In this document: positions 32,033-56,264 of the stretch, piece after piece | Position numbering within the stretch: the stretch's first letter is position 1 | Layout of the letters: each line of letters starts with the position of its first letter | NCBI GenBank assembly: GCA_965202585.1 | Contig: OZ241830.1 | Span: forward strand, 15,810,001 to 15,874,000 | Direction: 5' to 3' | Length of the DNA: 64,000 nucleotides | DNA from: Thalia democratica | Taxonomy: Eukaryota | The notes under the pieces: generated by a model | The model's input: the letters and a program-made list of their open reading frames with translations, nothing else | What the model was told of the DNA's origin: nothing | Database searches by the model: none | Translations under genes and position numbers: made by a program

Positions 32033-33577
32033 TTAGACACCCGCATCGTTAGATTGTGACGTCAAACCTGCTTGTGATGACGTAATGTTTAACTGTGACG
32101 TCACCGACGTTCCCTTCAACTTCTGAGGCATTTCCTCACTAACTTGTGACGTCACATGCAACCCATCGTTCGATTGTGACGTCACATGCGAAAGTCCCTG
32201 GCTTTTTTGTGACGTCACAGGCATTCCCTCCCCAAGGTGCGGTGTCGACTGGCACCCGCAGCTTTTGATCCTCACAAATTTTCTCCTCACCCTCCTTCTA
32301 CTTCCTTTCTCCTTTCCTCCGCAACGCAACCTGGCGGTTACTTTTTCGTAATCGTACGGCATGCAGAACGAGCAAGATTTGAAGTGGTCAAAAGTTGAAG
32401 TGTCGACTATTGATTTGTCGTTGGGGATTTTTATCGAGGTTGGGATGAAGAATGAGTTGCATTGTCCGTAGCAGAACCTGTTTTCATAAAAAGTGTAAAC
32501 TTTATATAAATATATATATATATAAAAGATTTATTTAAAGATGCAAAACTCAAAGGACTCGAGTTTCGTGACTATTTACTCATCAGCTTCAAAACAAGTT
32601 TAAAATAAAGCACAAAACAAAATCACTAATGAAAGTAAAAAAATTTTTTGCATAAATAGATTATGACGTAATTTTAAAACTATCAAAATTCATATTTATA
32701 TTTGGATTTTGATAGTTTCAAAATTACGTCATAAACTATTTATGCAAAAATTTTTTTTACTTTCATTAGTGATTTTGTTTTGTGCTTTATTTTAAACTTG
32801 TTTTGAAGCTGATGAGTGAATAGTCACGAAACTCGAGTCCTTTGAGTGTTGCATCTTTAAATAAACCTTTTTATTAATAAAGCCCTCAAGGTGGGCTCAG
32901 TGTGAAAAATTTAGTTTATTAAGTTAAATAACTTAATTCTATATATATATATATATAGATATATCAAAAGGTTTATTTCAAGATGTAAAACTTAAAGGAC
33001 TCGAGTTTCGTGCTTATGCACTCATCAGTTTCAAAACAAGTTTAAAATAAAGCAAAAAAACTATCTATTTATGCTAAAATTTTAACTTTCATTTGTGTGT
33101 TTTGTTTTGCGCTTTATTTTAAACTTGTTTTGAAGCTGATGAGTGCATAAGCACGAAAGTTGAGTCCTTTAAGTTTTACATCTTAAAATACTTCTTTTTA
33201 TTAATTAAGCTCTTAATGTTGGCTTAATGTGAAAGATTTGATTTAACAACTTAAATAACTTAACTATATAGATATATATATAATTAAGTATATATTTCTT
33301 AGTAATAATATTTTTTATTATACATAAAACTCAACCTGTTTCTAATTTTTCCTGTACAAAGACCATCTTCAGTAGTGATAACTTGTGTGACAAACTTCGT
33401 TTTACACCAGTCCTTCTTAACAAGTTTTTTGTTTGCAACCACGAGCGCCTCTTGTGTTGACTTCAGCAAATCCGCATCCTTCCTCCTCGCATTGTACGGC
33501 TTCCAACGACGGGAATTACCCTCGAGTGAGAGTTGAAGTAGAAGGAGGAGGGTCAGAATTAATTTGCTTCTAACCAT
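32033..33577 (-). CDS. grem: Gremlin-like DAN-family BMP antagonist, copy A, 228 aa; two exons
   Basis: Exon 1 is 33336-33577 and exon 2 is 32033-32477 (phase 2, AG|gttgag ... aacag|G). Signal peptide MVRSKLILTLLLLLQLSLEG, then KKDWCKT...NRFCYGQCNSFFIP...SCSFC...RC...SCGC. All nine DAN cystine-knot cysteines are present, with close similarity to the vertebrate Gremlin motifs KRDWCKT and NRFCYGQCNSFYIP. Confidence 0.93.
32549..32593 (-). ncRNA. Minimal type I hammerhead ribozyme with one stem II mismatch
   Basis: Minus strand reads TTTGAAG-CTGATGA-GTAA(ATAG)TCAC-GAAA-C(TCGA)G-TC|CTTTGAG. It is sense to the gremlin A pre-mRNA. Confidence 0.75.
32802..32846 (+). ncRNA. Minimal type I hammerhead ribozyme with intact core
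   Basis: TTTGAAG-CTGATGA-GTGA(ATAG)TCAC-GAAA-C(TCGA)G-TC|CTTTGAG: both conserved core boxes, a 4-bp stem II, palindromic ACTCGAGT stem III, a GUC cleavage triplet (predicted cut after 32839) and a wobble-rich stem I. Confidence 0.85.
32938..32963. repeat. (TA)n microsatellite; shorter tracts at about 32508-32524 and 33266-33281
   Basis: Seen directly; these tracts bracket the foldback elements. Confidence 0.85.
32991..33035 (-). ncRNA. Minimal type I hammerhead ribozyme with intact core and mismatched first stem I pair
   Basis: Minus strand reads TTTGAAA-CTGATGA-GTGC(ATAA)GCAC-GAAA-C(TCGA)G-TC|CTTTAAG. It is sense to the gremlin A pre-mRNA. Confidence 0.78.
33129..33173 (+). ncRNA. Degenerate hammerhead ribozyme with disrupted stem III
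   Basis: TTTGAAG-CTGATGA-GTGC(ATAA)GCAC-GAAA-G(TTGA)G-TC|CTTTAAG. The core boxes are intact but the stem III pair is G-G. Confidence 0.6.
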
Positions 33578-36493
33578 AGTTAAATTAGTTGAAATTTACA
33601 ATACTTTTATTATTCAACCTGTTGAGCAGAAAGAAGAGGTTTAAAAATTACTTCGATATAATAAACATTTAATATAAAGTTTAAATATGTGAGTATCTCT
33701 CTTATAAAAATATTTGTTAATATTAGTACAAATAATCTCTTTCGAATCAATATTTACTGAAATTAGTTTTAAATGGAAAAAAGTATACATTTAAATATAT
33801 TTACTCAAAACCATTTTTGTGTTTAAAAACCAGTTAAAGTTTGCATTTGTTATGGGATAATAAACAATTAACGATATTTTATCTAAAGATTTTCATTTAA
33901 TAAAAAAATCTATGCTTGTTTTATGTAATACATTATCTATATAAACCTTTATGAAGTGTAAATATTAGAAAACACAAACAACTGTTTTTAGTCACTTATT
34001 TCCAAATTCAAAGATAAAACTTACTCTTAAATCTATTTATGTATATTCGAGTATTTAAAATACTTAATACTGGTAAAATAGGTTAAACTTTCCTGTTTTG
34101 AATAACGTTTTTTTAATGCTTTTACAACTAAGAACTTACAATTATAATAAATAAATTGTTTTTTATATACTAGAACTAATGCTTAAAAAACAACGGCTAA
34201 ATACAAATGCTTTTAAGTTTGAGCATGAATTATACTTTTCAATAAAGACACCTATGTAGGCTTCCTGGCAGCTAGTGGACTAAACTATAACGAATAATGA
34301 GAAAAATTATCTTCTTATTAACCAAGGCTCGCATTTTTTCTTCAATAGTTTTTCTCTCGTATTGGTTTTTATCTTGAACATTCTGAGCTTTTTAAATATT
34401 TCAAGTTAGATTTTCGTAAGTCTTCTGTATTAAAAGTTTTTAGGTTAATGTCCCAATTACTAAAATATATCTATGCACTTATATAAATTTAAATTTGAAT
34501 TAACTTTATTATTAAGACTTTGAGTATTATAAGCTTCAAAATTAAATAATAAAGTAAAAGCAAGTATAATGAAATAAGAACGAAAAATGATTTTGTTTTA
34601 AATAATAATATTTAAATTTTTTTATTTGTTACTTCAAGATATATAAATTTAGGTTAAAAAATATTGTTTTAACTGTCGAAAATACATTTTTAATGCTTTT
34701 GTGAACGCAAGTACTTTGAAAACACCTAAAAATCTTTCTACTAATTTAAGATTAAAAAATAATAATTGTTGTTCTTTGAAATTTTAAAGGGATTTAAACA
34801 CTGTTTAGCAGTTTTAAAAGCATTACATCAGTACAGTTGCTTTTGATATAATTTCAGTTTAAAGTATATCATAACAAGCATTTAAGTAGTTGAATAATAG
34901 CTTATAATTACGTAACTACTTAGATTTTATCATAGGCATATGATAAACACAAATATGTTTTTAATACATTTGTTTTGATAACCTTACAGATAACTTATGC
35001 CTTATTTAATTTTGAAAATTGAAAATTATTTAAAAATTATGAAAATAATTTGAAATTATTCATTCTCACTTACAATGACATATAATAAAATTTAATATTG
35101 TAGCTAAAATAAATTAAACACAAATATAGTAGGTTTGTATTACGACTTAGAATAAATTAGGTTTGAAAATAATTTCAAAGTTAAATACAGTTACTAGAAG
35201 ACATATTGAAAATAGATTTTTAAATAAACTTCTTTTTCTACGCTATATACAACTGTAAAAACTTAATATAATAATAAGAACAAAATCTTAAAAATTTATT
35301 TTGATAGAAAAGGAAATTAAATAATTGAAATTAATTAAAATTTATCAAAGCACTTTAACAACTTTACGGGTCAAATCTTTAAATTTTCTGCGACTTTTGA
35401 GAACAGTTTAATATGTTTCACACATTGTTTCAAAAACTACTCCAAAAACAGTAGTAACCTTTTTCAAAACTCTAGCAGAAAAATATTTAACAAAAAGAAT
35501 ACACTGGTATAATAAACAAAATACATGCAGTATGTAATTTTTAATTTCCGTAAAATTTTAAAGGTTTTAACATAAAATACTTTTATCTTTAGTTAGTAAG
35601 CTAATTGATTTTATATACGATTAGATTGCAAACTGAAATTAAAACTTAAAGTATTGAAAAATGAATTGTTTGATAAACTACAGTAAGACAACAACAAATA
35701 CTTTTAAACCGATGTACAGCATACCAACGAAGTACTTAAATAAAAATCACATTCCTGCATAGCAATTGTTAAGTGGGTTTAGAGTTAAAGTTCTACTTTA
35801 GGCGAAGCAAGTTAAACTAAAATAAAAGTAAGTCGTGAAAAAGTTGTTTTTGTTGAAAACTGAACTATTTGTTTCTTAAAATAGCTGGAGCCAGCAAAAT
35901 ATTTTACGTAAAAACATTTTTAATTGGCACCAGTCTTTAGACACATATGTTTATATATGACAACAAATCTTACAAGTTTTTATCTAAAAGTGATTATCAT
36001 TAAGTCGCGCCAAAATTGTTCAAAATGGTTACGTCACTTTTAGTAACTTTTATTCTGCTTTGTTGTAAACTGGAAGTAGTTAATTTTTATTTTTGCTGTA
36101 CAGTTTTATTTTCTGTACAAATATCAATCGTCGAATATGGCTTTATGAGTTACTGCACAAAAATGTTTTTTGTTTTGTTGAACATTTTTAATTTTAATTA
36201 CTGAAAAATAATAATACCAAGTTGTAATAAAGTCAGGGCTACTTGTTAAGAAAGGTTAAAATATCTTAAATTAACACCAAAATGAATTGAATTAGATAAC
36301 GATGAGTCGGCAATATTATATACCGCGCAAGACGACACAAGTTTGTTATTGAAAAAGTCCAAACACTCGCAAATCTGATTAAACGCCAATTAACGTTTTC
36401 ACTCGCCGCACAAAAAACTTTTTAAATATCCAGTCTCGCACGAGGCGTCAATGAAAAATTTGATAAATGATAAATATTTGTTAACACTCACCG

Positions 36494-36508
36494 GGCGCCT
36501 ATGTGTCT
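36494..36508 (+). promoter_or_regulatory. BMP-responsive element GGCGCC-N5-GTCT (Smad1/5 plus Smad4 bipartite site) upstream of gremlin A
   Basis: The sequence GGCGCC-tatgt-GTCT exactly matches the GRCGNC-N5-GTCT consensus. It lies in a block conserved in arm B, about 2.9 kb upstream of the ATG. Confidence 0.6.
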
Positions 36509-39500
36509 CAATTTGTAAAAAAATACTTTCTACAAATTCGATTAGCAGAAATCATAATTAAAAAGCACACACTAAATTGTTTGCTTTCTGATGGAAAAGC
36601 GACTTTTAGGCTTGTTTACACTTCCTGAAAGTGTTTTAAACCATTAAAACAGTTGACTTAGTTGAATTAGCAGCGAATTTAAGTTTTTATTTGGGAATTA
36701 TTACAAGCAAACATTTTTATTTAGGCGCCAGTTTAATGCAAAAGGTCTACACAGAAATGTTAAAAAAAAATGCTAGACGATGTTTACATTTAGGATTATG
36801 GTTTGACCTCGCTTATGACTAATGGATTAAGATATTTATTAATTTATATCATTTAAGATCCATTAAGTTTGTTCTTAGCTTTAATTATTTGCTTGTATTA
36901 AAAAAATCTATAACTCATAAACGTAAGCTTGACTTTATCATCTTTTATAGTTTCTACTAACTTATATGCTGCCGGATTTATTTAAAGTTTATTGATAATG
37001 TTCATAAAAAGATAAAAAAAGCGCTAAATATGACTAATTCTAGAACCAGGTGCACAAAAGAACCTTTTGGTTACCGAATTGTACACCGCTTAACTACTTT
37101 TTAACATCTTGCTCTGAGTTAGGATTCTTAATATGAAAAATTAAGTTTTAAAATCATTGTAGTTTTTACGTGTATATTCTAGTCTAACAACTAAAACTTT
37201 TTGATACAAAGTATTGTTATTTAATCGATTATTTAGAAAAACTGAAAAGAAAACTAAACGCAATTGCTTGAAAAAAGAATAACTTATAAGAAGTTTACTC
37301 TAAACTTGTATAAAAAGACAAAGAAACTCATTCTAACAAAAACAAATTTGAATACTTTTAAAATTTCTTTTTCAGTACAACTTAAGTTGTAAGAAAGGTA
37401 TTTGATAAAGATTAAAGCTCATTGATATATAAGCTTTAATTGTCTCAGTTCAGTTTATTTAGTTGTGCGGCATACCGACTTAAAAGTTAAGCTTTTAGTC
37501 AACAATTTTTATAACTTACATAATTTTAGTCAAAAAAGTCTATATTGTCACATAAGATATTTTTGTTTTGTATATATTTTTTGTTTATTGTTAGGTAAAA
37601 ACTGTTTGAAAAAATATCATAAAAAGTTATATTTGTTAATATTTGTAACAGTTGTTTAAACAGGCAATTTTACACATTTCACACGAAACACAAACTCTAA
37701 ACTTCACAATCAATATTGCGTGACAAAACCACTAGTTTATTATTACAAACTTCCGATACAAATTAACAAACTGTTACAATTATGACAGCTTATAAATATT
37801 TACACAACTTTACACCCCTTTTGATGATCAACTTCCACACAAAACTTACAAAACCGCCCTATTATAAACTAACAATCACAACATTACACTAACGAGAACG
37901 TAAACAAACATTAATGCCCGCACAACAGAAGTTAACAGAATTGAAAACTGCACGAGTTGTTATTTCAAACCTCGAATGGGGGTCGCGCCTTTCGCTTGTG
38001 CAAATAAACTTTCGGTACTTATTGTCATTTGCACATTCGACTGGTGCCAGTGGTAGACGCTGGTTGACAAAAGATTAAAAGTTTGTAATAACAAAGTTAA
38101 ATTGTCATCTGGGTCAAAGAGTAGTCAGTAAGTCGCAGTTTTGTAAAATGCTTTGTTTTTGTTTCGAGAAACGAAAATATACAGTTCATTTGATTGTGTT
38201 GTAAAATTTAAATACAGATGAACAATACAAGAAGTTTTGGGTACAAATAACTATTGTTTGTGGGTATATTTTTTTTAATAGTAAAAATAATTCCTAAATA
38301 AATCTTGATGTCATGTCATTAAAGTTTTTAGATAACTCTACTGATAACTACAGCACTTATTTGTTTTAACTATGTATAACAATAAACAAACGTGATTGAA
38401 GTTAGTTAAGTTTTAGTAAATTGCGAACTTATCAAATTTATATTTTACTATAGTAGAAAGCGCTTAAAACTTTAAATAGTCAAAGAGAGTCTTTCTTTTT
38501 TTATGCTTACAAAATAAAACCACAGACTGCAGTAAAGAAAAAATTAAAATGTTATTTTTATAGTTTGCTTTTGGCTGTAAAACTTTCTGGTTTGATTAAA
38601 TTTAAGAATCAGACAGACTCCATTAATTTGTATATACAAACAAAAAGTTTAAACTAACATTCGTTATTTTTGTACTAAATTACATCACGTTTTTAGTTAA
38701 AAGTCAACTTTTAAAAACACACTGAACTTTAAACCTCTTAAACCCTAGCCGGTTAGAGATAGTCGGTTTTTAATACGAGCTCGTAATTTTAGGTAGCTTA
38801 TCAATGTTTTCATCAAGTTTTTTGATCTTGCAGACTCCGTTGACTTGTTTTCCATAAACAAATTTGCGCTTCCAAACTTCTACTTCCCCTAACTACTGTC
38901 GAAAAACTTCTGCTTCTTATTTATTGTTTCTACTTATTATGTTTTGCTGGCATCATAGGCTTTGTAAATAGCCAAAAAGTTAACCTGGCGACTGTCGCGC
39001 CACAATTTTATAATTGTTATTTTTTATTTTCTATAAATCTCATAGTCAAAATGCTAGACTTTTAAGTTTACTTGTTTTTTGTACCTTAATTCAGAGTATT
39101 AAGTTATCAATCAAAATGTACTAAAAGTTTTGAATAAACGAAGTTAAAGTGTAATATCATTAACAGGTAAACTTTATTTGTCGTAATTTCATCGATACTA
39201 AATTGCTGCGATAACTTTCTTGTACCAAAGCATTTTGTTCGAAAAGTTTGTTTTAAAAAAGCGCTAATAAATACTTATATATATTTTTTATGTATAACTT
39301 CAGAATGCTTCTACTGGACTTAAAATTGAAGTAGCTAAATATCTATTACAAAACACAATAAATACTACGAAACAATAGTTCTTTGGATTTTATTTACAAT
39401 TTGCAATAACTTAAAGACGCAATGTTTAAAATATTTTTGTTGTTTGTAATATATATCTATATGTAAATAAATAAGTGTTTTAACAACGTATTTACTAGTA

Positions 39501-40920
39501 TAGCGTTATTTGTAGAATATTATAGTGCTAAATTTTGTTCAAGAAAATTCAAAATTCAAATTTATAAAGTTGTTGGTTTTACCTTGATGTGCTATAAGGT
39601 TTTAATCAAAGTTTGATTTTTTTGATTAACAACTTCAATAAGTTAGTAAAATGTTATAAGATTATCAAAACGGCTTAATAAATAATATCAAATGTAAGTG
39701 TATTTACGTAACATTGTCAATTACATAAATTATTGGTTTATTACTTGTAACATCCTTAAAATGTGACGTAATAGTAGCAATTTCGGGAAAGTATAAACTT
39801 GGTTTTAAATTTTGTCGCTGGTTTAATAAACGACGGTTACTATATGTCTGAGCTCAAAACAACTTTTTGATGAGATTAAAAATGTCTTTGAAATAACTTT
39901 AAAGAACTAGACAAATACAATATTTAGAAACCTAAAAAAAACTTTCTGTACTTTATGAACATGTTTGATAGTCTTGATGTTAGTTTATAAACTTACATTT
40001 GCAAAACTTTTTATTTCACTTAAATGTCATACTTATTAAAAGTAAGTTAAAAGCTAACCTAACATTTTGCACGAAACATATTAACGTTGCCTATGGAAAT
40101 ATATAATTCTTTTATAATAATAACTCAATTTATTAATAAAAAGCATTAACAAAGTCTGGTAGCGATTATACTTAAATAGATTAAACATTCAAAATTATCT
40201 GAAAACAGCAATGTTAACAAGTTAATAACAATCAGAGCTTCATAAAACATCAGGTAACCTTAACAATTATCGGTATTTTTTTTACGTCACAATCTGATGA
40301 TTACGACGTAACAAGAGCGGATTTGCGACGCCGGTAATAATCAAATTAGAAGATTCAAATAATTTTCATTTGGCGCCGTGTTTTTGATTGGTGGCGAGTT
40401 GTAATTGGTTAATTTTATTTTAATCAGCTGATTGGTGATAAGCTTGAAAATACGGCGCCTTTGAAATTTTCTTTCCAAGTGTTAAATATTTATTAAATAT
40501 TCTGAAAACACGCTTAACTCTGCAAGACTTTTAACAACGTAGGTTCTTGTTTGCAGAAACCATTAGAACAAACTGGTGTAATTTAAGTTTTTTAGAAGCA
40601 AAAAATGAGTTTAGTTACCAATATTGTTTTATTAATGAATACAATTTTTAAACTTTTACAGTAATGAGAATTAAACGTTAGGTTTTGAATTTAATTAGAA
40701 GATTCACATGGTTTTGTACGTGGCGCCTCTGAGAACTCAAGTTTTATATTAATTTGATGATAAAATGTTGTTTTATTTTATGATGTTTTGATAATCTGAT
40801 TTATGATAAGCCGAAGAGTGCGGCGCCGTGTTTTGATATTCCGAGAACATTTAACAAATATTTATATTTTCAATGTGTCGTTGTTGTTATACCAAACTTG
40901 GCTATATCTTTGTGTTGTTC

Positions 40921-41333
40921 GGGTGCACGACTATTCAAATTCCGACAATTCAAATTCTTAAATAAAAACTGAAACCGCCTCAAATAAAGAAGTAATGTAT
41001 ATTTTTCAAATATAAAAAATACATGTGTAGGTAATATTAATATCTACAAGATATATTTCTTTCTTTTTGCAAAACATTGAATAATTTTTAAGATACGGCT
41101 CAAATAAAGTAAAAAACAGAGTTATTTTTAGTAATTTTAAAATATCTTGAAAAATATTTTTGACTTTGCAAAAAAAAAATAGCTTGTAGATATTAATAAA
41201 ATCTACATACATATTTTTATTTTTTTTCAAATTTGTTTAACTTATTGAGATATAGTCGTTTAAATATTTAAATATTTTAAAGAATTTGAATTGTCGGAAT
41301 TTGAGTTGTCCGAGTTTGAATTGTCATGTAACC
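40921..41333. mobile_element. Mutator-like (MULE) MITE, 413 bp
   Basis: 9-bp TSD GTGTTGTTC at 40912-40920 and 41334-41342; termini GGGTGCACGAC / GTCATGTAACC; a 25-bp perfect subterminal inverted match (TCAAATTCCGACAATTCAAATTCTT) with short internal tandem repeats. Confidence 0.78.
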
Positions 41334-42019
41334 GTGTTGTTCTTAACAAAAATTGATTGAAAATTGATAATTGAATTAAATAATTGTAGTTTGACTGTTG
41401 CATTACGAAATTTTAATAAATTAAAACGTAGTAGATTATCAGTTGCTTCAAAAACAAATTTTATTGAAATGAAAACTACATTGTTAAGTACCATTTTATA
41501 GATGCTTCATATACAAACTTAAAAATTAACATCGTAAAACGAAATTTAATAAACTAGCTTAAAAAGTTGTTTTGTGATAAGGAAATAACCAAGTTTTGAT
41601 TTCAAAATACAATATAATATAACTATTCTTAAAATGTATTCTGTGCATTGATAATTTGTTGAACAAAACTATATTTTTGATGAATTTTTTTTTTGCAAAC
41701 AACTCATTATTTAAAGTATCTAAGAATAATACAATAGCAACAAAATATTTTTTTAAGATTTTATAAAATTATCTTTAAATAAGACTTAAAGAATATAGAA
41801 ATAAATAGATCAAACAGCTTAAAAACTAGACAAGTTTGTTTTATCAACTTTAAATTTTTTACGTTAAACAAAGCTTATCAAAAGTTTTTAAGGATTTTCA
41901 AAGGTTAGTTCAGTTAGACGTTTCAGTCAAACAAATAAACTCACGCAAACAGAGTTTTGACAATCTGATTATCATACATGTTTTGTCTTGTTAAGCCCAA
42001 TCAATTCTTGCGTTAGAAA

Positions 42020-42051
42020 GTTGTCATGGCAACCATGATTGGTTTGGCGCC
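42020..42051. promoter_or_regulatory. X-box + CCAAT + TTTGGCGCC module (arm A); mirror copy at 48245-48276
   Basis: GTTGTCATGGCAAC-catg-ATTGG-tt-TGGCGCC is identical in reverse complement at 48245-48276, while the wider surroundings diverge. Confidence 0.55.
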
Positions 42052-42599
42052 AAAAATGAAAGTTTTGTATGGAAGTTTGTTGTCAGCATACGCGCGCCCG
42101 AGTTAAGCTGGGGATTATATTTTTTGAACCTCCTTATATGCTTATTATCTTCGGCACTACCTTTTGGTACGCCGCAGGAAATAATTTCATTATCAATAAG
42201 TTAAAAAAAAATGTTTTCTAATACATGTAATAACTCAAAAATATTTTTGGTTTTCGTGCTGTCAATAAAAATACTTTTTTTCAATAACTAGATTTTTTTA
42301 AGCGCTTACTCTGTACTAGTAAAATATTATAGAGAATAATCTCTTAACGTACTGCATATATACTAAATCTAGTCAAATTAGGTTGACTAATTAAATAGGT
42401 TTAAAATTTACTTTTTTGAATGTGTCTAGTAGTGCACAAACAACAACGACAACTGTTTTAAAGAATAATGGTTTCATTTTGAACTTTTTTAAAAACATTA
42501 ATTTCTTTAAATTATGTTTTCGTTTCAATTAAAAACTTGTCCTTTTTATAATGTAAAATGACGCGTTTTTTTATTTGTAAAGTTTTCTACTTTATTGCC

Positions 42600-42850
42600 A
42601 TAACTACTAATGAGGCAACAGACGTCTGTGATTGTTTGGCGCCAAAACTCAGTACTCGTTGCCACCCGCGGTTGTAAGTGGTTTCCATGGCAACGTCACG
42701 GGGTTCCACCGGGTTGCCAGGGCGTCCTGAAGGCGCCTCAGAATTCGAAATGTGTTTTCTGTTGCCGCCGCGCTGAAACAAGTTTTATCTGCTGCATTCG
42801 CATTGCAGCAACATTTTGCGATTTTTCGCGGCACGTTTTTTTGTGTTTTA
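42600..42850. promoter_or_regulatory. GC-rich conserved non-coding element with an RFX X-box, several GTTGCC half-sites and two GGCGCC hexamers (arm A)
   Basis: GTTTCCATGGCAAC at 42681-42694; GGCGCC at 42638 and 42732; conserved in reverse complement at 47395-47640. Confidence 0.6.
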
Positions 42851-45688
42851 CGCTATCAAGTTAGCGAGAGAGTTCAAGGAAAGAGAGACACAATTTAAAA
42901 TATGAGAAAAAATGAGTCTTAGTTGTTGAGAAGGAATTTTATTATAAATTTTCAAATCATATACGAGTCGCTGCAATAAAGCTTACAAAAAATAAGAAAT
43001 TTAAATAAAATTACGGGTTTAAAATACAACTTGTAATATTTTTGTTTAAAGTCTTTAAGAAAACTTGTATTTTGGTTTATACCTTAATTTTTCAAATATT
43101 TCTTTTGAATGTCAGTTAAGAAAGCAAAATTCAACTAAAATTAACTACAAATAGTTACATGCGAAACTGCCCTTTAGTTAAGAAGAAACTTTTTATCGAA
43201 ATTTTATCAGAAAATAGCTACTTATAATAAATTGTTAAGCCTTAAGAACTTAAAAAAATGATTTTATTAAATTATTGTTACGAATAACAACTGAAGATAA
43301 ATTAATCGGGTTAAAAGTTTTCAAAAACACTAGGACTTATTTTTTTGCTCTTCATCTGCAACCCCAGAATATCTAAAATAAGTTTCAAGTTAAAAAAATA
43401 TGAGGGAGTTCATGCTCAAATAATGATAATTTTAGTAAATCGTACATGAGTAATGTCTTACATAAAACAGTTTAGATAACAAAAAAACGTGGACTATTTA
43501 AGCAGTCGTAATTAAAATTATTAAAATAAGTTAACACTTTTTTTTTTTGAATCAATGACCATTAGAAAATTGAAGGTTCTTGAAATTTATGATCGGGCAT
43601 AACTGTATATTTTATTCAAATATTAGAAATATGGAAAAAACAAAAATAACAACGTTTGAAAACACATCAGAATAAAAACAGTCAAATAAATAATTAGAAA
43701 ATAAAATTTTTATTTTCTTAAACATCCATTTAAGATTAAAGTTCCAAAAGTAAAAACAATTTTTCTGAAAGGTCCCACTCAAAAATTTAAACCCCAATTT
43801 AATGTATGTTTTTAAATTAATGGCAAAGGAGCATTCTCTAGAACTAAAAAAGATATTAGTTAGCTTTATAATAAGGAAAATAGTTGGATCTAAAACTTTG
43901 ACTTTAAAAAAAATTGCAACAAATGCTAATCGAGATAAGTTAACGCTCATTTCAAGTATTTTCTTGTCTGCTATTAGTGTTGTTTAACTTGTTTTACTAA
44001 TTAGGTTTAAGTTTAGTTTTTAAGTAAAAAAATGATCTCATTTTCTATGTTTATTCTTTACGCTTTAGGGTTAGACTTTATTTTCATTATATCTTACTAG
44101 ACAAGTTTTAGAGTACATTATGAATAAAACTTTATTCAGTTAACAAATAACTTAGTTAATTTTATTTTCTGTTCTTTCTTTTTATTAATTGTTTTATTTT
44201 TAAAGGTTTAAAAGTTCAGACTAAAAAATTTTTTTTTAGCTTTTTAGAAATTATTAAGCATGTGGTGTATGCCTCGATAACCGATTGGATTTTTAGTACA
44301 CCAGTTCCTTAGACCAAAAATGTTGAGCGATTGTTTTTATCGTTTATTCTATTTTATTTTATCTATTTATTTAAAACATTCTAAAGTAAAGTTTTTGTAT
44401 TGTTATTGTTGTTTGCATGGTGCTTCAACACAATATGTTCATTCATGTCATGTCTTGTTTTATATAGAGTAGCTCTAAGTATTATTCGATATCGGCATTT
44501 AGTATAAGTAAAGTATAAATTCTATCATGGATTTTAGTTTGGATGTACACTTCACTATACCCTTATATATTTGTTTATCTTAACCATTAAGTTATGCTCA
44601 GTAGTGTAAATTAAAGTTTTAAAATTTGATAAAAATGAAACCTATTAGAAATGTTACTTCTTATTTTCATCCACAGAGCAACTAATTAGATACGTTTAAT
44701 AAAATTCTTAGTTAAAATTCTAAAATATTTTTTTTTTAATATCTTAGTTTTTTGAAGGTTTTTGCCATTTTATAGGTTTTAATTGTTTTTCTTCTAGTAT
44801 ACTATATTTAATTAAAAAACTTTCTTTAAAATAACTTTAATAATTTTAATAAGTTTTTTTTAGCCAAAATTGTCACACTAATGCTGGACACTTTCAAAAA
44901 AAGTTTTATCAACTTTTTACTTAAAAAAGTTTTTTGATTTATAACTCATGCTGTTGCAATTTCCTGGTTTCAAATTTTTTTTTAACTTCAGAATACTTTG
45001 ATACTAAAGTAGTAATAACTAGATTAGTTATATGTAAAGTTTGAAATATTTAATGAACACTTTTAGCAAATTAAAGTTTTAAATATATAGTTTTTAAAAA
45101 TCAAGTACATTAAAAATTGCATAAACTCGATTCCTAAAGATATTAATATTTTTATAAACCTGATAAATAACAACAAATACCCTTTAATATATAAACTTTG
45201 CTTTATACAGTGTACTATTTAGCTATTAAATACTGTTTTTACTAAAAATATTTTTTTATATCTACAAATATAAAACTATAAGATTAAGAAAATATATGAC
45301 AGGTTTTTAAACTTTTTACATGATATTTATTTTGTAACGTTTTTGTAAATTTATGTTTTTTTCAAAAACTAACTGACTCTATTTAAAAATAAATATAAAC
45401 TATAGTTTTTTTTCAATTATGTAAGTTATCTTAACTTCTATAAATACTGCCACCTATTTGTTTATATTTTTTGTAAGAAAGTCAATCTTATTTAGTTTGT
45501 TGCAAATATTAAACAGATATCCAATACACTGTGATAGATACTGAACCTAGTAACATTATAATAAATTTTTTAGTTGTTTTGTACTTAATAAAACATTTTC
45601 TTATAGTTTATACTACACTGTCATTTTTTTCAAAGTAAGTAAAGAATCTTTTTATTTTAGAATTATCTTCTATCTATTTTATTTATAG

Positions 45689-45830
45689 CAGGGTTTCTCA
45701 AAGTAGGCCCCTTTAGGATCATAACCAGCAAAGGGACCACAGGGTGGCCATGAGGTCATAAATTAAATTTTACACTACATGTTCTGGAGTTGACGAGGAA
45801 AAGCAAAAAAAAAAAGGTCTCAGACATTTT
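45689..45830 (+). mobile_element. Truncated left end of a hAT-Charlie-like element
   Basis: It begins CAGGGTTTCTCAAAGT, a typical Charlie-type terminus. No matching right end was found. Confidence 0.4.
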
Positions 45831-45940
45831 TAATGGTAGCTTTGAAACTTATGCTAGACACTATGGAAATATTAAAACAAATTATGGGGTAATAAGATAT
45901 TAAAGACAAAATTAGGTGAAAAATATTCAAATCACAAAAA

Positions 45941-46190
45941 GTAGGCGCTGGGCAGCTAGCCGAAATGGTTTCAGCTGCCGGTCCTACGTATCAAGCTCAC
46001 GTCCTGATGGAATAGTCATTTCAGTCTGAAAATACGACCAATCTTCACAACCTAATACACATCGGGCTAACAGAAGTGCTGGCCACTGATCGTATTCTTA
46101 TATTCTTGCGTAGTCGTCCCCATGGTAAGCGACCACCGGGACTCGAACTCGGGACGCAGGACCAGCAGTTGGAAAGCAAAACCGCCTGTT
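45941..46190 (-). mobile_element. tRNA-derived SINE remnant; partial second copy at about 46362-46420
   Basis: The minus strand has a B box / T-arm CCCGAGTTCGAGTCCCGG (B box 46140-46148) after a degenerate TTTCCAA loop, then a GC-richer body ending GCGCCTAC-TTTTT. The end aaaagtaggcg...gctgccggtcct recurs at about 46362. Confidence 0.55.
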
Positions 46191-47394
46191 TAATCTAATT
46201 ACGGTATATATAAAATTTTAATAAATTATTAAAAAATAAGAGTTGAGACAGTTTTTTTGTTAAACCAATTTCATTCTTTATAAAATTTTAATTTAATTTT
46301 TTGAATACACTTATTATTTTTAAAATATCTAAGACAGAATTAGATAAAACTGACTTAAATTTAAAAAAAAGTAGGCGTTTTGGCTTGGGCTGCCGGTCCT
46401 GCGTACCAGACAGATACCCTTGCAGGCTAGGTAGATTAAATATATTAACAAACTGGTTAACAGAAAGATCTATTTTTATTTGTACATCTTCTTTTAAAGT
46501 TGTAAAAATTGTACTAACTGCTTTTTTTGAGAGAGGAAATTAGTTATATCTTGTAATTGCAATTATATCAACTATTTTTTGGTCTTTCATACCTATACAG
46601 TTTTTTTGTTTGTTACTATGTAATCAAACGTTTTAAACTGATGTTTAAGAAAAAGTATTATTTTTTTATTTTCATTAAATCATTTCTTTATTACTTAGGT
46701 TTATTTAAACGACATTTCAAATTAACTGCAAAGTTTTATTTCTTAGAGTAAATTATGAATAACTGTTTATTGTTTCTAAAATAAATTTTATAATTTTGTT
46801 GATTGGTGACCTACTATTGTTTTAATGTAAAGCTTTACGGTTAAAAATTTAATTCATACTTTCCACAACCAAATATTCAAAAAAAAAACTAAGTTAAAGT
46901 TTACTCAATAAAAGTTTTTGACTAGTTCATTATTAAAAACTTTTTTATAAATATTCTAGAAATATGATTTAGCTATGTTTTGTTTATGCTATAACGAACA
47001 TAGAGAAAATTTTCATAGAATTAGAAAATAAATATTATTATCGATATAAAAAAACATTAAAACAAAACAAACCTAGTTTAAAAAGCTTATTTTAAGTCAA
47101 TAGTTCATATAGTAGTATTTTGTTATGTTTGCAGGTGTAAAATGTGCAACTATATTATAATTAACTTTAATTTAAATATATACTAAACAATTTCTTAACT
47201 AATTATTTAAAAAATTCAAAATTAATAAACTACATAATCGATAATACTTAAAACAACTACTGGTAATCTTATAAACTCAAAACTTATGTTTAAACATTCT
47301 TGCAACGATTCAGTCACTGATTAAAACTTTTAACAAAAACGCTTCTCGACGACCAGAACTTGCATTTTTTATCAATTCCAAAATTTTCTCATTA

Positions 47395-47640
47395 ACACGC
47401 AAGAAAGCTTGCCGCGAAAAAACACTGATTTTTGCAAAATGTTGCTGCAATGCGAATGCAGCAGATGAAACTTGTTTCAGCACGGCGGCAACTGAAAACA
47501 CATTTCGACTCGTGAGGCGCCATCACGACGCCCTGGCAACCCGGTGGAGCCCCGTGACGTTGCCATGGATACCAATTAGCAACCGCGGGTGGCAACGGGT
47601 ACTTGTATTTGGCGCCAATAATATCGCAGACGTATATTAC
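47395..47640. promoter_or_regulatory. Mirror conserved non-coding element (arm B)
   Basis: GTTGCCATGGATAC at 47559-47572; GGCGCC at 47516 and 47611. Confidence 0.6.
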
Positions 47641-50600
47641 CTCATAAGCAGTCGCCCTGTATACTATGGCAAGAAATTAAAGTTTTACGGGTTAAATAAA
47701 TAAGTTTTCTATAAAAAGTTCAAGGAGATCAGAGGGTAAACACGACAAAAAATTTATTGAATCTTAATGTGTTGTAATAAAAGTTAAAAGACTAATAGTA
47801 TTATTTTTTTAGCTAGTTAGTTTTATATATATTTTTTTGTAATAGTTAACTAATACACACAGTTGAAAACGTTAACTTGAAAGTACACAATTGATTAAGT
47901 TTGTTTGATATTAATAAGTTATTAACTTTACTAATTTAATAGTATTAAGAAGTTAAGGCGAAAGTTGAACTTTTATATATCTTAATTAGCAAAACTAACA
48001 ACAACATACAGTTTTCTAAGTCAAAAATGGTCTTTGTTTGCAATTTAAAGCCATAATCATAGTTTTATAATTACACGTAATTCAAAGCGTGTTCTTCTAA
48101 ACGTCACTAACAACAAATCATCGTTGATCGTAGATCAAGTTAAAAGATAACAAGCAGATAAGAAGCTTCACGAAAATATAATCCCCGGCTTAGAAGGAGC
48201 GCGCGTATGCTGACAACAAACTTCTAAACAAAACTTTCATTTTTGGCGCCAAACCAATCATGGTTGCCATGACAACTTTGACGCGAAGCGGTTTTGTTAG
48301 CACTGATTGGGCTTAACAAGACAAAACAAATATGATGCAAAGGAAAATAATCGGATTGTCAAAACTGTGTTTGCGCAAACTCAGTTATTTGACTGGAACG
48401 TCTTACTGTGGCTTGATTGCCTTTAGAACCTTCTAATGAGTTTGAATAAAGTTAAAAACTTCTTATATGTTTCGTTTAATTTAAAACGTTCTATTCAATT
48501 AAAAAAAACTTGTTTAAATCGTAAGCTTTTTGACCTGCTTAATTCTACAAATATTATTCAAAACTTCTTTTTTAAGTGTTTGAAGAGAATATTACGAATA
48601 TTGTTTTCATAAGTTTGCTAAAACTAAAATTTGCTTTTTAAAACAACTAGATACTTATAAGCAAGCCGTAAAAACAAGGTCAAAAACAAGTTCTAGTTAT
48701 TAATTTTTCTGACAGTTATACCAGAAAATTTCATTTATAAAGGCTGTTTTAACCATTGAAAGTTTTTAATAAACATAAAAAGATTTAAAAATAGTTGGGT
48801 AAAAATACAGTACTCAGCTTTTATAATGTTTTAGAGCATTTTTAAACTAAATACTTACGATTTATTCTACTTTAAATTTCAGTAGAACAGAGTAAACATA
48901 AACTATTGATTCTTATTTAAGTTTATTTATGATCTTTTAAAGTAAAGTAAAACTTAAAATAAACTTAAAACAAAAGTTTGATAAACATTCACTAATTTTA
49001 CTTACTTATAGAACCTAACGTTTTGTTTTCATTAATGTAAATATTTAATAATTTACATTTATAAAAAAAAACATTATTGGTATCTAAACTCAATTTTTTG
49101 CTTCTAAAAGATTTAAATTACACCAATTTGTTTTAAATATTTCTTCAAACAACTAACCTACCTTCTTATAAGTATTAAAGAGTTTAGCGTGTTCCTCAAA
49201 ATATCAAATGAATATTTAACACTTTTAAATTCTCATAGGCGCCATATTTTGAAGCTTATTAATAATCAGCTTATCAAAATGAAATTAACCAATTACAACT
49301 CGCCACCAATCAAAAAATACGGCGCCAAATAATAATTATGTGAATCTTCTAATTTGATTATTGCCGGCGTCGCAAATCCGCTTTTGTTACGTCATTATCA
49401 GCAGATTTTCACGTCACACCGGTGCCAGATGGAATTTCGTTTGCCAAAAAATATAGAGATGTTCAAATCTATTATGAAGCCCTGACTTCGATTATATATT
49501 GTAAATGTCTTTATAACTTTTTGTTTTTTTATGAGAATATTAAAGCTTAAATTGTTTCATAATTATAAATTAATATAAGAATAAATATATAATATATACC
49601 TAGTTATATATAATAATTTTTAAATATCCAGCTAGAAATAATTATGTCATAAAGAGTTAAGTATAAAAGTCTGTAACTATTTTTAAATAGAAATTAAAAG
49701 ATTGTTGTATATAACTAAATTTATACCATAATCTTATCAGTTTTATGGAAGGTTATTCCGATGATGCGCTAAACAAAACTAATTAATATACTTTTTCTAA
49801 ATGAGTGACTTATAATTAAACTTTTTAGTTTTAAAATTATTAACAAAACCAAACTACTCAATAACATATATACTATTTTTAAATAAGTATGTAAAGTAAT
49901 TTTTATTTATGGTTATTTTTTTCTAAAAGCAACACTTATGTGTTTAATGCGAAATAGTGTGTTAGCTTTTAATAATTTAACAATAAGTATAAAATTTTCG
50001 AAGAAAATAAAACTATTTTCACATATATGTGTAAACTGTGGTCAATTTACATATTTTAAACAAAAACTTTGCCGATATCAGGTTATAAACTAACAGCCAT
50101 AGTACCAAATATGTTTCAGATAAGATTAATTCTGCAGTTTTTTCAAAATTTCGGCATCAAAAGCAGTTTTTTGTCTCGACGTTTAAAACAAGTTCAAAAG
50201 CACTTTTAATCTATTAAGAAGTATAAAGAAGCTCAAACTAATAGTCATCGAAGTTTGATAAAGTTATATCAGAAAAAAAAACTTTCACCTTTTCTAAGCT
50301 TATCGCCATTACGTCACACTGAAGAATGACGTCACAATAAAGTTTGCATGTTGCCAGCTGATGTACGTAGTTTTGGGTGCATTATTTAAATTTAAGGACA
50401 AATTAAACTAGTTGATGGGTATGATTTACATGTTTCTCTGTATGTTATTTATGTTACAGTTTTCATGAATGTATCGATTATAATAACCTTATAAGAATTT
50501 AATAAAACAAACACATAGGTTCTGAAATAGTAACTAATTTCTAGAAAAATAGATGAGTTGAGTTTTATATATAATCTAATAAAAATATAGGTTTAGAAAA

Positions 50601-53272
50601 ACCGTTTTCAGATTAGTAATCTTTTAATTGTAATATTTGTTTAAACTGCATCCATTAAGGTTAACTATTTAAAATTTACTTTATATTTTTAGAAAAAAAA
50701 TAACTTAATCTTATATTTTCAATTCTTTTTTAAAAAACCAAACTGTTTATTTTTGCTTTTATTTAAAACATTATATTTGATAACTTTATATAGTCTAGTT
50801 TTAATCTGTAAAACATCCATCAAGTTAATATTTAATAAAATAGCATATTTTGAAATAACAATCTAATTAATTAAACTATTGAGCTAAAACTTAAAGTTAT
50901 AACATTTGACGAAGACATACCAACTAATAATGTCAAAGAAATTTTTATATAAACACCTAAAGTAATGCATTATCATAAAATTGTGGCGCGACAGTCGTCA
51001 GGGTAACTTTTTGACATTTTACCAAGCCTATGACGCCAGCAAAACATATCATGTAGAATTCTTTCGACAATAATACGGTAGAAGTTTGGAAGCGCAAATT
51101 TGTTTATGGAAAACAAATCAACGGAGTCTACAAGATCAAAAAATTTGATGAAAACATTGATAAGCTACCTAAAATTAAGAGCTCTTATTAAAAATCGATT
51201 ATCTCCAACCGGCTAGGGTTTAAGAGGTTTAAAGTTGACTGTTTCTTTTTTTTTTGTAAACTTTTAACTTTTAAAATGTTGTGTATATTGCTTTATATTT
51301 ATTTAATTTAGTACAACAATAATGTTAGTTTAAACTCAGTGTTTGTATAAACAAATTAATGGAGTCTGTCTGATTCTTATACAAAATCACATAAGAAATT
51401 TTAGGAAACATAAATAAGCTAGAAACAAAACGTTTTTGTTTTGTCTGCAGTCTGTGTTTTTAATTAGTAAGCATAGAAAAAACGACTCTCTTTGACTTTT
51501 TAAAAATTTTAAAGCGCTTTTTACATAAATAAAGTAAAATCTTGTTTAGTCAGTATTTTACTGAAAAAAAAACTTCAATCATGTTTGTTTATAGTTATAT
51601 TTTGTTAATAAATATAAATTAAATATTCAGGTTATAACTTAAAATAATAGTTAGTACGAGGCAAACAGTTGTATAAAGTTTATTCTAACTAAAAAAATAA
51701 ATTTATACCTACAAATGATAATTATTGCTACCGAAAACAAACTTCTTGTATTGTTACTTTATATTCTAATTTACAACACAATCAAATGAACTGTATATTT
51801 TCTTTTCTCGAAACAAAAATAAAGCATTTTACAAAACTGCGACTTACTGACTACTCTTTGACCCAGATGACAATTTAACTTTGTTATTACAAACTTTTAA
51901 TCTTTTGTCAATCAGCGTCGACCACTGGCACCAGTCGAATGTGCAAATGACAATAAGAAACGAAAGTTTATTTGCACAAGCGAAAGGCGCGACCCCAATT
52001 CGAGGTTGAAATAACAACTTGTGCAGTTTTCAATTCTGTTAAATTCTGTTGTGCGGGCATTAATGTTTGTTTACGTGCTCGTTAGTGTAATGTTGTGATT
52101 GCTAGTTTACAAAAGGGCGGTTTTGTAAGTTTTGAAGGGAAATTGGACTTCAAAAGGGGTGTCGGATTGTGTAAATATTTACAAGCTGTCATAATTGTAA
52201 CGGTTTGTTAATTTGTTTCGGAAGTTTGTGATAATAAACTAGTGGTTTTGTCACGCAATATAGATTGCTCAAGTTTACAAATCGTTTGTTTTTATGTGAC
52301 TTGTAAAATTATCTGTTTAAACAAGTGTTACTAACTTAAACAAGTTTAGTGTTTTGATATTATTATTATGAGCAATTTTAATATAAACATTAAACATAAG
52401 CATATATTTTCTAATAAAAAATAGTAAGTGTTTATTGATGTCAAATAAAGTAGACTATTCTTTTGAAAATTAATTTTAAATTAATTATCTCATTACTAAT
52501 TTACTTAATTTCGAATCTATAAAAATCTATTTTAAACCAGTGGTTTGTCTTTTGATAGTTTTATAGTTTGTTTAGTTTAGTAATTTATAAATATAATTAA
52601 GTTTAACAAAACTTTAAAGTTCTTATTTGTTTAAAAAACTTTAGATTATTCATTTAAAAAGGTTTAAAATAGTTTTAGTAAAAGTTGTAAGGAATTTAAG
52701 TACTACGATTTTCACATATCTTATATTCTTCAAAAAGCAGTTGATTAGTAATACATATTTGCTTGACAAATAGTTTTTGAAATATTCATCAGATTCAAGA
52801 ACTACAAGCAAAAAGAGTTTGCGTAAACTAACTAAGAATGATATACTTGATCATGATTAACAAAATTAATAACTTAATTTCAAATTTGAGAAACTTTAGA
52901 AAATAAACCACAGATTTAATGGACAATAAATGTTAATGATGCATTTGTTCGTTAACTAGCAATTCGGAAGGTCAAACCATTATTTAAAGTGTAAACAGGG
53001 TCTTGTGTATTTTTTTCAAGGCAATTCCGTAGAGACTTTTGCATTTAGTTAGCGCCTAAATAAAAGCTTTTGCCTGTAATAATTCTAAAATAACAGCTTT
53101 AAATCGCTGCTAAATCAACTAATTAACTGTTGTAGCCTATTTAAAACACTTTCAGGAAGTGTAAACAAGCCCTAAAAGTCGCTTTTCTATCAGAAAGCAA
53201 ACAATTTAGTGTGTGCTTTTTAATTATGATTTCTGCTAATCGAATTTGTAGAAAGTATTTTTTTATAAATTG

Positions 53273-53287
53273 AAACACATAGGCGCC
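53273..53287 (-). promoter_or_regulatory. Paralogous BMP-responsive element upstream of gremlin B, with one mismatch in the Smad4 half-site
   Basis: Minus strand reads GGCGCC-tatgt-GTTT. It is the mirror of 36494-36508. Confidence 0.45.
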
Positions 53288-56264
53288 CGGTGAGTGTTAA
53301 CAAATATTTATTATTTATCAAATTTTTCATTGACGCCTCGTGCGAGACTGGATATTTAAAAAGTTTTTTGTGCGGCGAATGAAAACGTTAATTGGCGTTT
53401 AATCAGATTTGCGAGTGATTGGACTTTTTACAATAACAAACTTGTGTCGTCTGGCGCGAAATATAGTGTTGCCGACTCATCGTTATCTAATTCATTTTCA
53501 TTTTCTGGTGTTTTTAGAGATATTCTCAACGAGTAGCGCCGACTTAGCTACAAATTGGTGTTATTAACTTTGAATAAACAAAATTATAACTTATTTAAGC
53601 TTATGAAAAGATTTGTGAAATAAAGTATAAAATAAAATGATTAGTCTGTTAATGTTAAGTTGCAAATGGTATATAAATACGGTTAAAAACTTCCTATACT
53701 AGTAAAATTATAACTGTTCAAAAAAATTACAAACATTTTTGTGTAGTAATTCAATAAAGTTATATTCAGCGATTGATATTAAAAAACGAAACTGTACGAT
53801 AAAAACAAAAATTGACTACTTCCAGTCTACAACAAAGTAGAGTAAAAGTTACAAAAGTGACGTAACTGTTAAACTTTTTTGAACAGTTTTGGCGCGATTT
53901 TATAATTTTTACTTTTTAAAATAAAAAAGTTGTAGAATTTTATCATATGTATTTTAAAACAACAAATGTCTAATGACTGGTGCCAATTAACAAATGTTTC
54001 TACGTAAAATACCTTGCTGGCTCCAGCTATTTCGAGAAAGTCAACAAAAACAACTATTTCAAGACTTGTTTTCATTTAAACATAAACTGCTTTGACTGAA
54101 ACTGAAAAATTGAGCTTTGACTATAAAATCACTCAACTAAATGATCGAAGTAATTATAAAAGCTTGTTATTTATATTTAAGTGCTTCGCTGGTATGCTGT
54201 AAACCGGTTTGAAATTATTTTGCTGATGTTCAAGCTTAGTGCATAACACTAAAGTTTTTTGATTAACTTTACTTTTATTTTAGTATCCAATATACTCGTA
54301 TTTGAAAGCTTATAAGCTAACTTACAAAAATAAAGGTTTTTGATGTTAAAACCTAAAATTTGTTTACTGAAAGTAAAAACTAAGTACTCTAAGTAGTTTG
54401 TAAATTATATATGGTATTATTTTTATTGCTTAAGTTTTAAAAAGTGTTGCTGATGTTTCTATCATATCAAAATAGAATATATATATATAGAATCAAATAT
54501 ACATAAAATATAAGATTGTTCTAAACAGTTGTACAGGTTTTAATCTTTTAACTAATAAGTTCGTAAAATGCTTCGATAGTTTTTATTTTGAATAATTTTT
54601 TGATTAATTTCTTCTTTTGTCAAATTTATTTAAAAAGATTTTTTAAATATTAATTTAACTTTAGTTTTATGTTGAACACTGATTATTAAAGGAACTTCGT
54701 TTGAACTTTCTTTCAAATATTTGTACTAATAGCTGTATGTTCAACTTGACATTTTTTCGAATCTAGTAGTTTACATTGTAATGCATTCATACTACTATAA
54801 TGTTATTTTTTTTCCAGCCAAACCATTTAACTTTATGCTTATGTATTTATAGTTAAGAATGCACGGAATTTTCAAAATGCAACTATCTATAAGATATCTG
54901 TAAGGTTATCAAAACAAATGTATTAAAAACACATAGGGTTTATCATATGCTTATTATGAAATTACGTAATTATAAGCTATTATTCAAGTAATTAAACGAT
55001 TGTTATGATATAAATTAAACTGAAGCTATATAACAAGCAACTGTACTGATGTAATATTTTTAAAACCGCTTAACAGTGTTTAAGCCCCTTATAATCTATA
55101 AAAAAAAATTAATGTATATTTTTCACTCACATCTTAAACTAATAGAAAACTTTTTAATGTGTTTTCAAAAAACTTTTGTTTCTCATAAAATCGTAAAATA
55201 AAATTGTAAATAAGTCGACAGTTCTTAATTTTTTTATAAAGCTCATTTTTTCATATTGACTGACAAAAAATGTGATTTCTATATAATGATTTTTTTTATG
55301 TTGCGGTGTTATGTCATGCAGCTTTTATAAGGATTTCTATTAAATCTTGAAGCTTAAAATATTTGAGGCTTTAATAATATAATTAGACTTTTGAGGTATA
55401 AAACACATATATTTTACTTAGTACAAGTTAGATTTTATATTTGTTTTGAACTTACGTAAAAAATACAAAACTTTGTTTAAAAACCTTTTTGAAAGTAAGA
55501 ACGAGAGAATAAAAAGTTTGGAGAAAAAATGCAAACTTACTTAATAAGAAGCGTATTTATCTTATTTGTTGTATAATTTATTCAAAAGACTGCTGAAAAA
55601 CTGAAACAGATATATTTGTTGAAAAGAAGCTAATAATTAGTTTTTTATTAGTTAATTCTCTATCAGTCTGTTATACTACAACTTGAAGTTTAATAAAATC
55701 TGTTTTTTTTTGCCGTTCGTATAAGTATCAGTTCTAGTGAATAACAAAATAAATTAAAACTAAAATTAGGCGTTTTAAGTTACAACAGTATGAAAGTGTT
55801 TTAAAAAAAGTAAATTTAAACTTGTTCTAGTTAGTACAAAAAACTCTTCAAGCAGATATTTTTAAATAATTCTAGAGTAAGGTTTGTTGTTAAGCTTTGA
55901 AATAATTGACAGACAACAGCTAAAACTTTATTTAAAAAAATTACATCACATAAATAATTACATCTTGATAATCAAAGAATATAAAAGAGTTGTGTATTGC
56001 TAAAATATAGAAAATTATATAAGTTATTATTAAATATAAGTTATTTTACAAGAAAACTTTAAAGAAGGTACGACTAGTTGTTTCAGTATTTATAACAGTT
56101 GCAGTATTAAAATTTAATTTCAGAAACAAAACTAGTTTTAGTTGTATATAGTTTATTTATTTTTGTTTTTATATTCGAAAAGTTTACTGTAAAAGTTTTA
56201 TTAAAACCGTTAGTTAATTTGTATACTCGTTCACAGATTTAAGCATACTAAGAAATTTTTTATC

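Follow-up and report, generated by a model that had tools for sequence, protein, structure and literature searches.

The DNA considered here is a 64,000-nt stretch of Thalia democratica contig OZ241830.1 (15,810,001-15,874,000, forward strand), hereafter the window, in which all coordinates without a contig prefix are counted. Its subject is a field of GGCGCC hexamers at 36494-53287 (16.8 kb), in DNA that is only about 25% G+C across the whole window. The field is the spacer separating two head-to-head gremlin genes, A and B, both of the DAN family. The DAN cystine-knot domain PF03045 is recognised in exon 2 (E 9.9e-13) and exon 1 (E 0.0012) and is also carried by relatives; the spliced product of gremlin A is 228 amino acids long. 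The gremlin spacing described for Hydra (10.1101/510602) does not fit this locus. The upstream regions of A and B are inverted duplicates of each other: one arm runs over about 34.7-42.85 kb, the other over about 47.4-55.1 kb, and 4.5 kb of unique sequence separates them. When the sequence is extended past the window, the gremlin B unit proves to be duplicated in tandem over about 25 kb (47208-72536 matches 97081-122761, with a period of about 50 kb and 78-92% identity), and consequently a third gremlin, C, lies beyond the window end. Gremlin C has the same upstream modules (C6:15,907,000-15,918,100) and five further GGCGCC.

The hexamer occurs 16 times in the window, 15 times in the field and once in an exon, at 4854, and each of these positions agrees with an initial annotation made from the letters alone. 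That annotation had also put the number expected by chance at far fewer than one. Dinucleotide-preserving shuffles of the window (n=100) gave a mean of 0.55 GGCGCC and a maximum of 2, against the 16 observed. Genome-wide there are 13,311 occurrences in 801.8 Mb (the control word CCGCGG has 13,482), and this rate of one per 60 kb predicts 0.28 for the field, against 15 (Poisson P ~3e-21). The enrichment is specific to the motif and is not one of general G+C richness: among all 36 hexamers composed only of G and C, GGCGCC is found 15 times in the field and the next words at most 7 times despite being counted on both strands, several of these runners-up overlapping GGCGCC itself, while CCGCGG is found twice.

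The sites fall into six mirrored, paralogous pairs (36494/53282, 40372/49321, 40454/49238, 42046/48245, 42638/47611, and 42732/47516) and three that are specific to arm A (36724, 40722, and 40822). Since the sites have been duplicated, only about 9 of the 15 are independent, that is, ancestral. Arm A alone holds 9 GGCGCC in 6.3 kb (P ~4e-15). Conservation of six pairs between the arms, as first annotated, is upheld by alignment of the copies, and the mirroring is real, but it arises simply because the gremlin upstream regions were duplicated in inverted orientation, and a third copy lies outside the window. A search of the genome with each of the GGCGCC-bearing modules described below (M1, M2, M3, and M5) returned exactly three copies apiece, all at the gremlin locus. 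The motif is therefore not borne by a dispersed repeat or a transposon, and the objection that it might belong to a repeat family, which the annotation had raised against itself, fails.

Three-way alignment of the upstream regions gives 50% identity overall, with islands of 81-91%. Four of these conserved islands, M5, M3, M2, and M1, contain the GGCGCC sites; they lie upstream of the ATG exon at distances of 3 to 9 kb (Table 1). Of the seven ancestral hexamers that can be aligned, five are intact in all three copies; each of the remaining two has a single-base change in one or two of them. M5 is 98% identical between copies A and B over 259 nt. Its element at 36494-36508 in copy A reads GGCGCC-TATGT-GTCT, an exact GGCGCC-N5-GTCT, as the initial annotation had it; copy C carries the same form and copy B has GTTT. 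A distance of 76 nt, within which there are CCAAT boxes (ATTGG), separates the two hexamers of M3, and two sites resembling the cyclic AMP response element (CRE), ACGTCA/GACGTAAC, lie upstream. The tandem duplicate of M3 in arm A is only 64% identical to M3, yet both of its hexamers are intact (P ~0.0045). M2 presents, in order, an X-box (GTTGTCATGGCAAC), a CCAAT box, and TTTGGCGCCAAAAA. M1 carries a perfect X-box, GTTTCCATGGCAAC, four more GTTGCC/GGCAAC half-sites, and CAGACGTCTG, and CRE-like sites occur in M1 as well as in M3. All RFX-type X-box matches of the window lie in M1 and M2 (42020-42033, 42681-42694, 47559-47572, and 48263-48276; four distinct X-boxes, or seven matches counting both strands). 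Very probably the field hexamers are functional, as parts of cis-regulatory modules associated with the gremlin paralogues.

Table 1. Features of the gremlin A and B genes and of the spacer between them (window coordinates).
Feature	Positions	Strand	Remarks
Gremlin A exon 2	32033-32477	-	Remaining DAN domain and VTSQ-repeat tail; Pfam DAN E 9.9e-13
Gremlin A ATG exon	33336-33618	-	ATG at 33577; strong splice acceptor 33620-33619
M5 copy A	36283-36739		Gene-proximal; GGCGCC at 36494, 36724; three-way identity 87%
Non-coding block copy A	37572-39014		No GGCGCC; 80-97% identity between copies
M3 copy A	40284-40684		GGCGCC at 40372, 40454; intact in all three copies
M3 tandem duplicate	40685-40860		Arm A only; GGCGCC at 40722, 40822
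M2 copy A	42017-42135		Hexamer at 42046; three-way identity 86%
M1 copy A	42603-42850		53% G+C; TTTGGCGCCAAAA (42638) and GGCGCC at 42732
Unique spacer between inverted arms	42851-47392		Unique centre of 4.5 kb
M1 copy B	47393-47652		GGCGCC at 47516, 47611
M2 copy B	48144-48408		GGCGCC at 48245
M3 copy B	49012-49414		GGCGCC at 49238, 49321
Non-coding block copy B	50972-52407		Counterpart of 37572-39014
M5 copy B	52969-53589		GGCGCC at 53282; Smad4 half-site GTTT, not GTCT (one base, 53274)
Gremlin B ATG exon	56237-56500	+	ATG at 56265; splice acceptor just before exon
Gremlin B exon 2	57736-58066	+	Second exon of spliced gene

Several features of these arms stand apart from the hexamers. The strong acceptor at which the ATG exon of gremlin A starts would point either to trans-splicing or to a non-coding exon farther upstream. 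On the gremlin strand the M5 hexamer is followed by CG and then GTGAGT, which has the look of a splice donor, and what may be read as a TATA-like box lies near 36320 in copy A; M5 may hold a 5' non-coding exon together with a promoter, or gremlin may be trans-spliced. The hexamer-free block between M5 and M3, 1.4 kb long, probably represents either an enhancer in its own right or a non-coding exon; a coding gene was considered there and rejected, as the open frames differ between copies. No Rfam family matched the window at gathering thresholds, nor 36-43 kb at E up to 1, and no tRNAs were found; a structured RNA or tRNA in M1 was rejected on this ground and on fold z-scores of -1.4 and -1.35 against shuffles. 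Arm A alone has a foldback-like element of about 400 bp (40929-41335, 67% self-complementary) between M2 and the M3 duplicate; it is related to 75471-75899, past the window end. DNA contigs of a close relative (run X3) have G at 53274, which would give GTCT in M5 copy B and may reflect either a real difference between the organisms or cross-mapping from paralogue A or C. Across 47450-53449, none of the 40 differences listed for the same relative (139 more exist) falls in a hexamer.

GGCGCC is the accepted site of Smad1/5, the receptor-regulated Smads of bone morphogenetic protein (BMP) signaling, which engage it cooperatively through a pair of MH1 domains (PMC4605309). Vertebrate and fly BMP response elements combine it with a Smad4/Medea half-site at 5 bp (PMC7669266). 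All 15 field sites are exact instances of the GC-rich Smad1/5-type site. The exact bipartite form is that of M5 in copies A and C, and a second ancestral site, in M1, fits the looser GGCGCC-N5-GNCV: 42732 reads GGCGCC-N5-GACG on the minus strand, and its partner 47516, on the plus strand, is GGCGCCA-TCAC-GACG.

Genome-wide, GGCGCC followed by GTCT at spacings of N4, N5, and N6 occurs 40, 225, and 44 times, where composition predicts about 45, so that N5 is roughly five-fold over expectation. A single satellite supplies about 40% of the N5 matches among the first 100 listed; should it make up the same fraction of all 225, the excess at N5 would still be roughly three-fold. This spacing-specific excess indicates that the Thalia democratica genome clearly employs the bipartite Smad1/5-Smad4 grammar and that the grammar is under selection there. 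The repeat unit of the satellite is about 420 bp long and includes GGCGCCCGCCTGTCT, which matches the BMP element exactly (for example at C1:13381824-13383521 and C2:12072090-12076947); genome-wide scans for BMP elements need to mask it. GGCGCC is also found in other repeats, among them an 85-bp unit repeated in tandem at many loci and a tandem repeat at C1:5.30 Mb whose period is 650 bp. On the minus strand at C2:34771247-34771738 there is a Smad gene with an intronless MH2 domain; one exact GGCGCC-N5-GTCT lies upstream of it at a distance of 17 kb, and a second is found some 100 kb off (C2:34788889 and C2:34872798). A search for CHRD (chordin) gave no match.

A pair search led to a second field, around a basic helix-loop-helix (bHLH) gene (C2:65.515-65.595 Mb; HLH exon at C2:65566654-65566971, plus strand). 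In 80 kb it holds 31 GGCGCC against 1.3 expected, and 11 of the 31 are exact GGCGCC-N5-GTCT. Seven of these 11 belong to a recurring composite, CACGTGA-N8-TTTGGCGCC-N5-GTCT-N2-TCACGTG, whose host modules are otherwise dissimilar. At another five sites N5 is followed by GTCG, and four of these lie within X-box-like sequences, GTCGCCATGACAAC being one; lone GGCGCC sites accompany the canonical elements. The locus shows that this organism makes heavy use of the bipartite element.

The best single explanation of the gremlin field, with a chance we would put at about even, is that BMP Smads read the hexamers and thereby give BMP-to-gremlin feedback. We infer Smad1/5 as the reader, activation as the response, and gremlin as the target. 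The hexamers would be transcription-factor sites in M5, M3, M2, and M1, and the modules were carried along in the triplication of gremlin. The likeliest reader would be BMP-activated Smad1/5, its MH1 domains seated as a cooperative dimer on the GGCGCC palindrome, and in M5 Smad4 would occupy the GTCT five bases away. Transcription of gremlin would in this way rise under BMP signaling, and the protein, once secreted, would dampen BMP, closing a negative feedback loop. There is precedent for such a loop: in Nematostella pSMAD1/5 directly targets gremlin and regulates it positively (PMC10849676), and in the mouse BMP4 activates Grem1, with a SMAD4 peak in one Grem1 enhancer of the limb bud, CRM2 (PMC8455560). 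The M5 element would be the strongest Smad candidate, the distal lone hexamers being less certain.

Several observations weigh against this explanation. GTCT stands at N5 in only one of the nine ancestral sites and is absent there from copy B; one more site fits GNCV, and the other seven are without a half-site at N5. Nor are GTCT and AGAC enriched within 60 nt of the field sites (6 against 5.8 expected). The hexamers are not conserved to a significantly higher degree than the modules in which they lie. At distant gremlin-like loci of other organisms there are 2-3 GGCGCC per 20 kb, where 0.5-1.1 are expected, and no canonical element, so that the hexamer excess at these loci would lend support that is mild at best. 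Further, three ancestral sites, M1a, M2, and M3a, have T-run/A-run flanks of the E2F type and stand beside CCAAT, X-box, and CRE-like motifs, surroundings that look more typical of promoter grammar. The proposal with which the initial annotation had closed, that BMP signaling directly regulates its own antagonist here, thus survives in part. In its favor are the flanking gremlin/DAN genes, the motif-specific and conserved enrichment, the N5 grammar, and the precedents in other animals; it is weakened by the single exact bipartite element among nine sites, the want of any GTCT/AGAC excess, and the three E2F-type sites.

Those three sites are the starting point for a different account, in which M1-M3 are E2F/DP sites acting with NF-Y (CCAAT), RFX (X-box), and CREB/ATF in proliferation-linked enhancers or cryptic promoters, a BMP response being confined to M5 if it exists at all. 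The 12-mer TTTGGCGCCAAA is an E2F motif both in literature listings and as a high-throughput SELEX consensus. It occurs, as TTTGGCGCCAAA(A), in M1 and M2, with ATTTGGCGCC in M3, and the paralogous copies preserve them all; of the nine ancestral sites two are perfect 12-mers, where about 0.06 would be expected, CCAAT boxes adjoin the sites, and the X-boxes and CRE-like sites described above share the same modules. The core TTTSSCGC, for which TTTGGCGCCAAA is the ideal palindrome, is nevertheless limited to the three sites named, two of them perfect. The remaining six of nine lack a T-run or A-run flank and are therefore poor E2F sites, and the field contains neither of the other E2F variants, TTTCCCGC and TTTGGCGG. 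Across the genome the perfect 12-mer shows no excess (74 against about 84 expected given GGCGCC and AT-rich flanks), and a TTT/AAA flank is also found on canonical GGCGCC-N5-GTCT elements at the bHLH locus. M1-M3 lie 6.5-9 kb from the gremlin ATG exon, which is not promoter-proximal, and there is no conserved reading frame nearby. No transcript contigs fell on the B-arm modules (47450-53449), a weak point in that none of the six public runs is on record as RNA and X4-X6 gave only chance matches of 18-34 nt. E2F had been offered as an alternative from the outset; it fits a third of the ancestral sites well and the rest poorly, and as an account of M1-M3 it appears unlikely.

Other E2F-type sequences lie outside the hexamer set. 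A paralogous pair of TTTGGCGCG at 36006 and 53888, just outside M5, and TTTCGCGCC at 53453 are the only E2F-consensus matches of the window that do not contain GGCGCC. Elsewhere, at C5:17552175-17552219, two TTTGGCGCCAAA palindromes stand 27 bp apart, and the second runs into AAAAAGTCT, which unites an E2F-type palindrome and an exact bipartite BMP element. Three further readings of individual sites were rejected: a YY1/Pho-like one of GGCGCCATATTT (49238), where copies A and C read GGCGCCGTATTT; an NFI one of TTGGC/GCCAA, which are half-sites without the spacer of the NFI consensus; and one of GGCGCCTTTGAA (40454) as a cell cycle-dependent element with cell cycle genes homology region (CDE/CHR), which is unconserved in copies B and C and wrongly spaced.

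As unlikely as the E2F account is one in which BMP has no specific part, the hexamer being read by another factor or arising as a by-product of G+C-rich X-box/CRE islands that would mark developmental loci throughout the genome. The X-boxes of M1 and M2 and the heterogeneous flanks of the hexamers are in keeping with it. The enrichment, however, is one of GGCGCC and not of G+C-rich words in general, and a third of the GGCGCC at the bHLH locus carry a Smad4 half-site at exactly 5 bp, an arrangement for which readers other than Smads offer no easy explanation. Weakest by far is the notion of a functionless cluster, a chance or historical concentration of hexamers multiplied by segmental duplication and kept alike by gene conversion: duplication does inflate 15 sites from about 9, the 98% identity of M5 between copies A and B suggests conversion, and the hexamers are no better conserved than their modules to any significant degree, but the density of arm A by itself, the placement of the sites in islands of high identity amid decayed DNA, and the survival of both hexamers in the diverged M3 duplicate make it very improbable.

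Returning to Smads as the readers, the lone hexamers might extend the known grammar. Conceivably, though we hold it to be unlikely, GGCGCC without a Smad4 half-site is a working element of Smad1/5 only, or of Smad1/5 with RFX/NF-Y, from which BMP-sensing landscapes are built around BMP-pathway and developmental genes. Because GGCGCC is so rare in this genome, such landscapes, the triplicated gremlin unit included, could be read directly from sequence.

If the field is BMP-responsive, it offers a compact and unusually legible case of a pathway inducing its own antagonist. Its three diverging copies would constitute a natural experiment on how a feedback enhancer evolves after duplication, and, together with the bHLH locus, it would permit a sequence-only map of BMP targets in an organism for which there are almost no functional data. 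The rarity of the hexamer makes the prediction cheap to test. Feedback of this kind is already established in cnidarians and vertebrates, and the conceptual gain is therefore modest.

Set against known systems, the gremlin field is at once familiar and peculiar. Within the same genome it resembles the bHLH field in extreme local enrichment of GGCGCC in AT-rich DNA around a developmental regulator, and differs in that a third or more of the bHLH sites are exact bipartite elements, often flanked by E-boxes, where the gremlin field has only one. Cell-cycle promoters that combine the E2F motif with CCAAT share with it the perfect 12-mer of M1 and M2, half of it in M3, and an adjoining ATTGG; unlike them, the field is distal and without a known transcription start, most of its sites have no E2F flanks, and no other E2F variants are present. 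The vertebrate BMP response element of Id and Vent2, GGCGCC-N5-GTCT, has the identical 6-bp palindrome and recurs in its exact 15-bp form in M5 of copies A and C, and the Drosophila activating element, GGCGCCA-N4-GNCV, is fitted by the 42732/47516 site, exactly so in copy B (the silencer element there is GRCGNC-N5-GNCT). The difference from all such bipartite elements is that most field sites are lone hexamers among CCAAT and X-box motifs foreign to the described elements. With the feedback of Nematostella and of the mouse limb bud it shares a BMP antagonist with Smad-type sites in an upstream landscape of several modules. It differs from both in being known from sequence alone, in the triplication of the gene together with its landscape, and in a density, at 9 sites per 6 kb, far beyond the single peaks seen there.

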